DNA of 64,000 nucleotides, taken from assembly GCA_037447605.1 (NCBI GenBank), contig CM074806.1:310001-374000 (forward strand). Direction: 5' to 3'. Position numbers and translations under genes: made by a program. Within the stretch, counting starts at the first letter, position 1. The number at the start of each line of letters is the position of its first letter. The DNA comes from Zygnema circumcarinatum SAG 698-1b (taxonomy: Eukaryota; Plantae; Zygnematophyceae). The notes beneath the pieces were generated by a model. That model made no database searches. It saw nothing but the letters and a program-made list of their open reading frames with translations, and was not told the origin of the DNA. Positions 41,401-44,400 of the stretch are shown piece by piece.

Positions 41401-44400
41401 CCGGGCAGCTGGAAGCTTCTCCTGGAATGCGGAAAGTGGTTCGGAGCCTTCGCCCCTCTCGGCTTGAAGATGTTTTTGCCATTGTGGCCCTATACCGCCC
41501 AGGGTGAGAAAAAGTGGAAAATTTTTAAGCGAACATGGATAAAATATATGGGAAGGGAAGGAAGGACATTTTTATTTTTTAGGCAATCATTGTCCTCATG
41601 TACGAAATTAGGGTTTTTTTAGTGACTCATTGAATGGAATTCGCACATTGCTTATGCATGGAGTCACTCGAATGAAGATCTCAGTGAGAGGGAGGGAGAG
41701 GCAAGAGCGAACCGAAAAGACTCTAAATACCATGTTGTAGAGGGAGAGGGAGAGGGAGAGGGAGAGGGAGAGGGAAAGGGAGAGGGAGAGGGAGAGGAAA
41801 GGGAGAGGGGGAGAGAGCGGAAAGGGAGAGGGAGAGGGAGAGGGAGAGATTCTGATGGCTTCTTGTGGATTCCCCATGTCTTGCAGACCTCTTGATTCAG
41901 GGTTGGTGCAGACCTTCATTGCTCGAAAACACGGATTGGAAATGGTGAGAGTCTTATTTGCCTCCTATGATAGATACTCTCTCACCTTCTTATATTCTCA
42001 CCTTATTCATCTTGAATCTTTCTCGACATTCTGTACAGACCCTAGGATCTGCTCAGTTCTAAAAAGCCCTTAAATAGCTGAAGAAGGTCTATAGGTATAA
42101 GAGCATTCATTTTTTTTGCAATATCTACGCCACTTACTCATATTTCTCTTTTCTTCCTCTTTCTTCTTCACTCTTTCTTTGCTCACGTCTTCTTCTTCAT
42201 TGCCTCCTCCTCTCTCTCTTCTCTAAAATATCTCGCCTCCCCCCCCCCATATATCACACTCCTTCCCTTCCTCCTCATCATCATTACAATTATGTATTTC
42301 CTACTACTTTTTTCCCATTCATTCATTCCTTCCCTTTATATTCTTTTTTCTTTTTCCAGGTCTCCTACGATGCCCCCCAGCTTGAGCCCATATTAGAGGA
42401 GACGTACGGAGTGTTGGTCTACCAAGAACAGATAATGAGAGCTGCGAGAGACTTGGCCGGGTACTCTCTGGGGGAGGCGGACCTGCTTAGGAGAGCGATG
42501 GGGAAGAAGAAGAGAGAGGAGATGGAGGCACACCGCCAACGCTTCACGAGGGGAGCGGGAGAGAGAGGGCTGGAGGAGGGAGTGGCGGAGAAACTCTTCG
42601 AGGTGATGGTGGGAGAGAGGGGGGGGGAGGGAGGGAGGGGAGAAAGGGGGGAGTGGGGGAGAGGGAGAGGTGAGGTGAAGAGGGGGAATGGGAGGGAGTA
42701 TGGCAGGGAGGGTTGGAGGTGGTGAGGGGAAGAGGGAGGAAAGGTGAGGGGGAAGTTGGAGGAAGTGGGGGGAGAGGAGGATGGAAATGGGGAGGGCGGG
42801 AGGGAGGGAGAGGGGGGAGGAGGATGTGCAGAGAGAGAGGAAGGGCGGGAGGGCGAGGGCGAGAAGGAAGAAGGCAGAGAGTGGGGGAGAGGAAACGGGG
42901 TAGAAAGCGTGGGTGGAGGAGTGGGGAGGAAGGGAAACTTCTCTCTCTCACTAACCCAATCTTCCTTCTCTCCTCATTTTCGCATTTCCCACTATTTATA
43001 TATAAAAAAAAATTCTCTGCAGTCATTTGGATTATAACGAAGCTACATTAGTGAATTACTCTTTCTTTCTTTCTTTTTTCTTGCTGTGTAGGTGCATTTT
43101 GCGGAGTACTGTTTCAACAAAAGTCACAGTGCTGCCTATGGATACCTCACATATGTAACATCACTTTTGAAGTCGAATTTTCCGGTTGCTTTTATGACTG
43201 CTCTTTTGAGCTGTGCCATTGGCCAAAGTGATGACCTTCAGAGATATACCGCTGCTTGTAGGTCAATGGAAATCTCTCTCCTTCCCCCATGTGTTAACAC
43301 GTCAGGCTCAGACTTTACGGTAGCAGAAGTGAGAGGAGAGAGGGTGGAGGGAGGGTGGGAGAGGGTGGGTGTGGGAGAGGTAGAGAGAGAGAGTGGTGTT
43401 GATAGTAGAAGCCGGTCTGTCGGAAACCGAAATGTAGGAGGAGGAGGAGGAGGAGGAAAAGGAGAGGATGGTTTTGGGGGTAGCCCCGGATCGATAAGGT
43501 TCGGACTTGCGGGAGTGAAGGGGGTGGGAGAGGGAGTGGTAGCGAAGATTTTGGAAGCGAGAGAGAGAGATGGCCCCTTTGCTTCTCTGCCTGATTTGTG
43601 CCTTCGAATTCAAAGGAATGGAGTGGAGAATAGGAAACCACTCGAAGCTTTGGCTAAGTCAGGAGGTTTTGACTGCTTATATAGGGAGGGCAGTGGTAGT
43701 AACGCTCCGTCAGAGGGTAGACTGGGTGTAGAGAGAGAGAGAGAGAGGGAGGGAGAGGGAGAGTGGGGCGGAGGGAGAGGCTTTCATGGAGAGAATGTGG
43801 TAGAAAACTTAAAGTTGGTGAGACGAGACCTTTTGCTTCTCCAATTGGAAGAATCGTGGGAGTGGGCAAAGAAAAAAGTGAAGGAAAAAAGCAAAAATCA
43901 ATCGAGTTTGTTCGATTTATTGAGTTTAGAAGAGGAAGGAGGAGGAGAGGAAGGAGGAGAGGTAGATAGAGATAGGGCTGCCGCGGAGCAGTTTACGGCG
44001 AGTTTAGGGTTCGTGGAGTGGGAGAGGGAGAAGGAGAGAGAGGGAGAGGTGGTGTCTATGAAGCAGGAGTTCTTGAAATGGGAAAAGGAGTTGTTGGGAA
44101 TCTATGTGAGCGAACATCCGTTGAAGGAGATAATGGATAGGACTCCGAAATGGCTGAACCCTATCGATATTTTCAGTGCGGGAGAGGTGGAGAGTGGGAG
44201 CATGGTGGTAGGAGTTTTGGAGGTAGTGGAAATGAAGGAGAGAGTGACCAAAAAGGGGAAGCAAATGGCTACCATTGTATTTGAAGACTGTTATAGGAGA
44301 TGTGAGGGAGTGATGTTTCCCATCCCATTTGCTGAGTATGGAGAGGTGGTGAGAGAGGGAGAGAGACTCTTAGTGTGGGGGTTGTTGGAGAAGAAGAGTG

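Follow-up and report, generated by a model that had tools for sequence, protein, structure and literature searches.

The stretch of DNA analysed here, called the window, comprises 64,000 nucleotides (64 kb) of contig CM074806.1 of the streptophyte alga Zygnema circumcarinatum SAG 698-1b (positions 310,001 to 374,000 of the forward strand). The window is eukaryotic nuclear DNA, with 50% G+C, GA/CT microsatellites and short N gaps, and two gaps of 10 N lie inside the gene region described in the following (37357-37366 and 40535-40544). The window contains a gene for DnaE, the alpha subunit of DNA polymerase III (Table 1). About 20 collinear exon matches, extending from 32843 to 44873, were obtained in tblastn searches with DnaE proteins of cyanobacteria and of Spirogloea, Mesostigma and Chara. 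In Pfam searches the exons follow the collinear order PHP, DNA_pol3_alpha, DNA_pol3_finger, HHH_6 and OB, with scores of up to 55.7 bits for DNA_pol3_alpha, 93.3 bits for DNA_pol3_finger and 72.5 bits for HHH_6. The exons were searched and placed individually and not as a joined spliced protein; the OB fold scored 21.8 bits (cut-off 27) and the PHP domain likewise stayed under its cut-off on short exons. Sequence matches among PDB entries are to Pol III alpha from M. tuberculosis, E. coli and T. aquaticus.

Table 1. Features of the dnaE locus, numbered from the first letter of the window.
Feature	Position	Strand	Evidence or remark
Nuclear cyanobacterial-type DnaE (DNA polymerase III alpha subunit), ~22 exons	32441..45057	+	3' end lies past 45057; start at ATG 32441 inferred
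Final exon on the N side of the intein site (end of fingers)	42359..42608	+	Pfam match to DNA_pol3_finger (93.3 bits) covering profile positions 97-165 (of 166)
Spliceosomal intron, 483 nt, GT..AG, phase 0, 71% purine	42609-43091	+	Removed in RNA contigs
AEY/CFNKSH codons (ligated-extein junction)	43101..43127	+	No insertion; Y/C boundary 43109/43110
Large exon: VHFAEY, helix-hairpin-helix, clamp-binding motif QSSLFDLL, OB fold	43092..44872	+	Pfam, PDB sequence matches, RNA contigs
Spliceosomal intron, 119 nt	44873..44991	+	44872 joined to 44992 in X7 record 16 and X20 record 13
Start of the next exon, C-terminal end of DnaE	44992..45057	+	RNA contigs and reading frame

The metal-binding start of the PHP domain (pattern HxHSxxS.LDG, exon 32843-32914) and the catalytic motif of the palm (PDIDTDF, pattern PDxDxDF, exon 39830-39925) are both intact, and by domain order together with these catalytic and metal-binding motifs the algal gene is classified as a DnaE-type family C polymerase. 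The PHP domain is preceded by an N-terminal extension of 134 aa in which Ser, Arg and Pro are abundant and acidic residues scarce, a composition compatible with a putative transit peptide. Four insert blocks of the N-half that are specific to cyanobacteria are common to the eukaryotic sequences. These blocks, the grouping in trees and a Cys residue at position +1 after the intein site identify the gene, as judged from its sequence, as a DnaE of the cyanobacterial type.

In many cyanobacteria, the naturally split DnaE intein occupies insertion point a of PolIII-alpha, and its extein junction is FAEY/CFNKSH (PMC2874743, PMC4760082). This agrees with the retrieved sequences: in cyanobacterial DnaE-N proteins the intein N-part, starting with CLSYDT, comes right after FAEY, and in DnaE-C ORFs an intein C-part of 35-36 aa that ends with ASN sits immediately before CFNKSH. 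The split at the FAEY/CFN site, from which the original prediction had started, is thereby confirmed. In Zygnema, direct reading of the + strand from 43092 gives GTG CAT TTT GCG GAG TAC TGT TTC AAC AAA AGT CAC, in which GAG TAC/TGT TTC AAC AAA occupies exactly 43104-43121 and the Tyr codon TAC abuts the Cys codon TGT. The algal gene has neither an N-part after FAEY nor a C-part before CFNKSH, and instead of two separate genes there is one gene with one mRNA for both exteins. As CFNKSH shows no variation across alignment A1, the match of the algal junction is due to homology and not to chance, and the Zygnema junction is the true split-intein site of cyanobacterial DnaE. When five N-parts and five C-parts of inteins were compared with the 64-kb window by tblastn, no remnant emerged (best E=0.3); the search for orphan intein fragments, which had been suggested for the genome, covered the window. 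The idea that the Cys residue at +1 is a relic of intein loss was considered and rejected, as the same residue is found in unsplit cyanobacteria and in a DnaE of the non-photosynthetic Caenarcaniphilales; in other bacteria this position is occupied by Gly, Ala or Ser. The Cys is thus ancestral to the phylum and an ancestral cyanobacterial residue.

The expression of the locus was assessed with RNA contigs from the public runs X7, X8, X10 and X20, which were compared with positions 42000-45200. Contigs from all four runs cover 42359-42607 of the exon before the intein site, which shares 75% identity with Spirogloea and 73% with Chara. The 483-nt intron is spliced out in three studies (X7 record 14, X10 record 2 and X20 record 8), with 42359-42607 joined straight to 43091-43338 and a one-base ambiguity that is compatible with GT..AG; one unspliced contig over the acceptor (42793-43120) is found in run X8. 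At the donor side the preceding exon ends with GAG GTG ATG, followed by GTGGGA, and at the acceptor side a polypyrimidine tract and AG stand directly before the first exon base at 43092. In the spliced contigs KLFEVM is followed by VHFAEY, and single contigs bridge the last exon of the N side and the exon of the C side. As the intron is removed in these contigs, the dnaE mRNA and protein are contiguous across the intein site. It had been proposed that DnaE is contiguous and intein-free at FAEY/CFNKSH; the junction codons and their coordinates are exact and the contiguity applies to mRNA and protein, but the DNA itself is interrupted by the intron, which stops 18 nt (6 codons) 5' of the Y/C junction.

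RNA coverage of the large exon on the C side comprises 43091-43338, 43363-43720, 43775-43926 and 44055-44872, and its Gly/Glu-rich low-complexity inserts are retained in the mRNA. Since the following intron is spliced out as well, the tail of the mechanically derived ORF 43092-44975 is intronic; the reading over the 44872/44992 splice junction, which starts with FGASFN, agrees with the C-terminal motif of cyanobacteria. When bacterial Pol III genes turn up in eukaryote assemblies they are frequently contaminants, and the two 10-N gaps in the gene region would fit such an origin. However, a bacterial contamination or an unexpressed pseudogene is refuted by the spliced transcripts and retains a negligible probability: the coding sequence is broken by about 20 GT..AG introns, two of which are removed in RNA of several studies, the catalytic and domain motifs are preserved and orthologues are present in Chara, Spirogloea and Mesostigma.

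The distance of only 18 nt between the intron and the intein site was considered as potentially meaningful and this was rejected. The chance of such proximity is about 0.3, a rough estimate based on about 19 introns per about 750 conserved N-half codons and on a position within 6 codons of a given site. Moreover, the 483-nt intron shows no similarity to the intein N- and C-parts in tblastn, and in the Chara gene residues 24-1497 are within one exon so that the intron beside the intein site is absent there. From this single exon it follows that the introns of the window, including the one at the junction, are not shared with Chara.

The state of the site among cyanobacteria was surveyed with 80 listed species loci, which were fetched with a pattern accepting both split and unsplit genes. 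Among those listed, 50 are unsplit and 30 are split, which bears out that some cyanobacterial lineages have an unsplit gene. A comparison with picocyanobacteria had been suggested; these are unsplit, but the unsplit state reaches other orders too, with 18 of the 50 unsplit loci listed falling outside picocyanobacteria. The unsplit loci include Leptolyngbyales, Alkalinema, Limnothrix, a Microcoleus, Cyanosarcina and a Gloeocapsa of Chroococcidiopsidales, and among the named proteins Chroogloeocystis, Kamptonema, Elainella, Phormidium tenue, Trichocoleus and Synechococcus OH2 are unsplit. Unsplit DnaE was furthermore reported for Gloeobacter violaceus, Synechococcus JA-3-3Ab and JA-2-3B'a and marine picocyanobacteria (PMC2823733). 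DnaE of Gloeobacter or Gloeomargarita was not present among the 80 loci listed or the named rows of two protein searches, and the likeness of Gloeobacter to the algal gene as a carrier of unsplit DnaE is taken from the literature; a literature search found no paper pairing Gloeomargarita with inteins. Split genes are found in Nostocales, Coleofasciculales, Crocosphaera, Snowella and Acaryochloridaceae and also in the early-branching Pseudanabaenales (L005, L017) and in the Thermostichales MAG BF4 (P0380).

The unsplit cyanobacterial enzymes (Prochlorococcus, Synechococcus, Cyanobium, OH2, Leptolyngbyales and Chroococcidiopsidales) show the same contiguous junction, the same domain order and Cys at +1 and are 45-63% identical to the algal protein. 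In contrast to these, the algal gene is interrupted by about 20 spliceosomal introns and carries the N-terminal extension and the Gly/Glu-rich inserts in the C-half. The split enzymes of Synechocystis PCC6803 and Nostoc punctiforme have an identical extein junction (FAEY before and CFNKSH after the splice point), whereas the algal gene is devoid of the intein N- and C-parts and holds the exteins in one gene and mRNA.

The best matches in protein searches were the proteins from Spirogloea muscicola (P0001) and Mesostigma viride (P0002), and a word search revealed as further homologues a protein from Chara braunii (P0160) and two further copies from Spirogloea. The window gene is closest to Chara and Spirogloea, and identities per exon to Chara, Spirogloea and Mesostigma range from 60 to 87%. 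An additional homologue, P0155, comes from a metagenome contig (62% G+C), where it forms an ORF free of introns beside genes for 40S-SA, GPI2 and DnaJ; its source is a compact eukaryote. All retrieved eukaryotic homologues, i.e., Chara, the three Spirogloea copies, Mesostigma and P0155, are contiguous at the site, and Chara, Spirogloea P0001, Mesostigma and P0155 show F[AS][EQ]Y/CFNKSH with no insert.

The gene family in Archaeplastida has already been described. A nuclear-encoded, plastid-targeted Pol III alpha was reported for red and streptophyte algae but not for Chlorophyta, with predicted transit peptides and with the archaeplastid alpha clade as sister to all photosynthetic cyanobacteria (Cyanophyceae); red algae, streptophytes and cryptophyte nucleomorphs were monophyletic, which fits primary followed by secondary endosymbiosis (bioRxiv 10.64898/2026.05.23.727376, May 2026). 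The Zygnema gene is likewise a nuclear cyanobacterial-type DnaE from the streptophyte algae, which are among the reported carriers, it has introns, is spliced and belongs to a streptophyte clade, and its position in the trees is the same as in the preprint. The text of this preprint does not contain the words intein or split and a protein length filter of 800-2500 aa was applied, and DnaE-N halves may represent the split taxa in its tree. New are therefore one more member of the family, from an additional species, and as a small addition to the preprint the explicit record that the site is intein-free in the eukaryotic genes.

Separate trees of the N-half and the C-half had been named beforehand as a check on whether the halves were re-fused. 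The C-half tree (62 rows, 412 columns, LG+C20+F+G4) unites the window exon, Chara, Spirogloea and Mesostigma in one clade (support 100/97). This clade lies outside the clade of all 44 sampled Cyanophyceae (98/92) and within the group of cyanobacteria and Caenarcaniphilales (96/93). P0155 is placed apart from the streptophytes in this tree, and eukaryote monophyly is seen in 12% of the bootstrap trees. The N-half tree (56 rows, 757 columns), which includes 13 DnaE-N halves after intein trimming, places the five eukaryotic rows in one clade (98/94) that is sister to 39 cyanobacteria (94/75), and cyanobacteria and eukaryotes together are separated from 12 other bacteria with 100/100. Four window exons of the N-half that were placed as separate rows all fall into the streptophyte clade (SH-aLRT 96), and each of them is most identical to a streptophyte sequence. 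On the basis of these exon placements and identities both halves belong to the streptophyte clade, hence they are congruent, and neither is nested in any sampled split group. This is largely the outcome that had been specified as speaking against a re-fusion.

How deep the eukaryotic sequences branch is less precisely defined. In AU tests of the C-half, a placement of the eukaryotes above Synechococcus OH2 obtained p=0.12 and a placement above Pseudanabaenales p=0.032. For the N-half, joining the eukaryotes to the crown group obtained p=0.35; a placement above Thermostichales obtained p=0.007, a value of little weight since the picocyanobacteria stand below Thermostichales in the N-half tree and confound the test. 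Some placements inside Cyanophyceae are thus not rejected and the exact depth of the eukaryotes is not fixed. The deep position may in part be due to long-branch attraction, since the eukaryotic end branches are long (1.5-2.7 in the C-half). An indel separating Thermostichales from the other cyanobacteria, as suggested by PMC2823733, was sought as a means of placing the eukaryotes but was not found in the alignments.

The label split or unsplit requires 5 changes on the C-half tree and 6 changes on the N-half tree. It had been expected that either outcome, an ancestrally unsplit gene or a re-fused one, would be informative on the plastid donor. This expectation did not hold, since unsplit DnaE is common, the label needs 5-6 changes, and a character that has switched so often among cyanobacteria is too variable to point to the plastid donor.

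Of the two origins that had been put forward, the unsplit donor is the best supported, and we regard it as probable that the gene was ancestrally unsplit and that its intein-free state was inherited unchanged from the cyanobacterial donor. All retrieved eukaryotic homologues are unsplit, as are many cyanobacteria, and the eukaryotic clade diverges outside all split-intein groups that were sampled. The gene belongs to the nuclear genome of a streptophyte alga, is rich in introns and is expressed, and after spliceosomal splicing its mRNA encodes one polypeptide. With one polypeptide running through the junction, no protein trans-splicing is needed; the DnaE product would most likely be imported into the plastid, the presumed source of the gene. 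The intein-free state would most likely have been passed on unaltered from the donor. The donor's state itself is not certain from the data because split DnaE occurs already in the early-branching Pseudanabaenales and in Thermostichales BF4.

These early-branching split genes would also be compatible with a re-fusion, in which the two halves were joined and the intein parts precisely removed, either in the nucleus after the transfer or earlier in the endosymbiont. Bacterial switches of state do occur, at least five times on the extein trees, and the AU tests leave space for a position of the eukaryotes inside Cyanophyceae. Nevertheless, a re-fusion is unsupported and appears very improbable, as neither half nests within a split group, the junction is exact and flanked by conserved residues, the 64-kb window is free of intein remnants, and the nearby intron lies off the junction, has no similarity to inteins and is absent in Chara. 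Furthermore, all retrieved eukaryotic lineages are unsplit, so that the event would have to predate their common ancestor. We judge it just as improbable that the split intein arose once, before Thermostichales, Pseudanabaenales and the plastid donor diverged, with the unsplit genes of eukaryotes and the scattered unsplit genes of the crown group as reversions. If this were true, an essential trans-spliced replicase gene would have been restored to contiguity repeatedly, once toward plastids.

Inheritance from the plastid donor was also weighed against a later horizontal transfer from another unsplit cyanobacterium, or a relative of cyanobacteria, into an early archaeplastid or a streptophyte ancestor. 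Such a transfer could account for a clade that is sister to all sampled Cyanophyceae and is not placed beside a particular early-branching lineage, which is unexpected for plastid genes, and for the separation of P0155 from the streptophytes in the C-half with its low recovery of eukaryote monophyly. However, the basal position is also what long branches would yield, the N-half unites all five eukaryotic rows, and red algae, streptophytes and cryptophyte nucleomorphs are monophyletic (bioRxiv 10.64898/2026.05.23.727376). A later transfer is therefore considered unlikely, and inheritance of an unsplit gene from the donor is preferred.

Taken as such, the unsplit DnaE in this alga is an ordinary and probably ancestral state. 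The comparison yields a useful negative result, i.e., that split versus unsplit DnaE fails as a marker of the plastid donor, and otherwise very little changes. For trees of the alpha subunit, split taxa need care since N-halves alone may stand for them. With a gene that is spliced and expressed, Zygnema joins the recently described archaeplastids whose nuclear genome has retained a cyanobacterial Pol III alpha.

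The DnaE gene of the window encodes a clamp-binding-type motif with a Gln that never varies in the DnaE alignment and an LFD that hardly does, and the Gly/Glu-rich inserts flanking this motif stay in the mRNA. The exon model is uncertain at the two 10-N assembly gaps, because these adjoin exons. Elsewhere in the window, the minisatellite has higher-order periods of 78-203 bp, a G+C content of 0.60-0.64 and a GC skew of ~+0.5.

Features located in the window
Feature	Position	Remarks
100-N gap	10712-10811	
15-bp minisatellite, consensus GAGGGGGGCAAGGCC	11088-17773	~7 kb
10-N assembly gap	37357-37366	inside DnaE gene region, adjoining exons
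10-N assembly gap	40535-40544	inside DnaE gene region, adjoining exons
Clamp-binding-type motif QSSLFDLL	43899-43922	conserved in the DnaE alignment

The gene structure differs between eukaryotic homologues. Whereas the window gene has ~20 introns, the Chara braunii orthologue (L081:1001-10193) carries residues 24-1497, almost all of its coding sequence, in one exon. A metagenomic eukaryotic contig of 62% G+C (L082:3001-7236) contains an intronless DnaE ORF of 1411 aa, which is neighboured by the eukaryotic genes for 40S ribosomal protein SA, GPI2 and DnaJ, and its source is probably an intron-poor alga. This DnaE groups with the streptophytes in the tree of the N-half, preceding the split-intein site FAEY|C, and apart from them in the C-half tree.

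In cyanobacterial DnaE, there are signs of inteins at other positions as well. A Thermosynechococcaceae MAG (L026:5500-6200) shows FAEY|C without an intein and an intein end (..THN|CYQEQIM) ~55 codons upstream, i.e., at a different insertion point, with an in-frame stop between the two; at this second insertion point the window reads VYQEQIM, without an intein. The N-exteins of the proteins from Cyanosarcina (L054) and Kamptonema/Oscillatoria PCC 10802 (P0153), both unsplit at FAEY|C, are ~450 aa and ~180 aa too long, respectively; further inteins are probably present at other DnaE sites. The residue following the junction (+1) is Phe instead of Cys in one cyanobacterial MAG (L023:6001-6020; MFAEY|FFNKSH), the sole exception among the 80 loci listed.

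The extein trees revealed that the split or unsplit state of DnaE differs between closely related cyanobacterial exteins. For example, the unsplit Phormidium tenue protein (P0269) and the split Coleofasciculaceae-labelled MAG (L060) are sisters (100/94*), as are the unsplit Synechococcus OH2 (P0179) and the split Thermostichales BF4 (P0380; 100*), and the unsplit Chroococcidiopsidales (L068, P0228) adjoin the split Nostocales (L012, L032, L053). The DnaE exteins look vertically inherited, while this essential gene changes between one and two loci.
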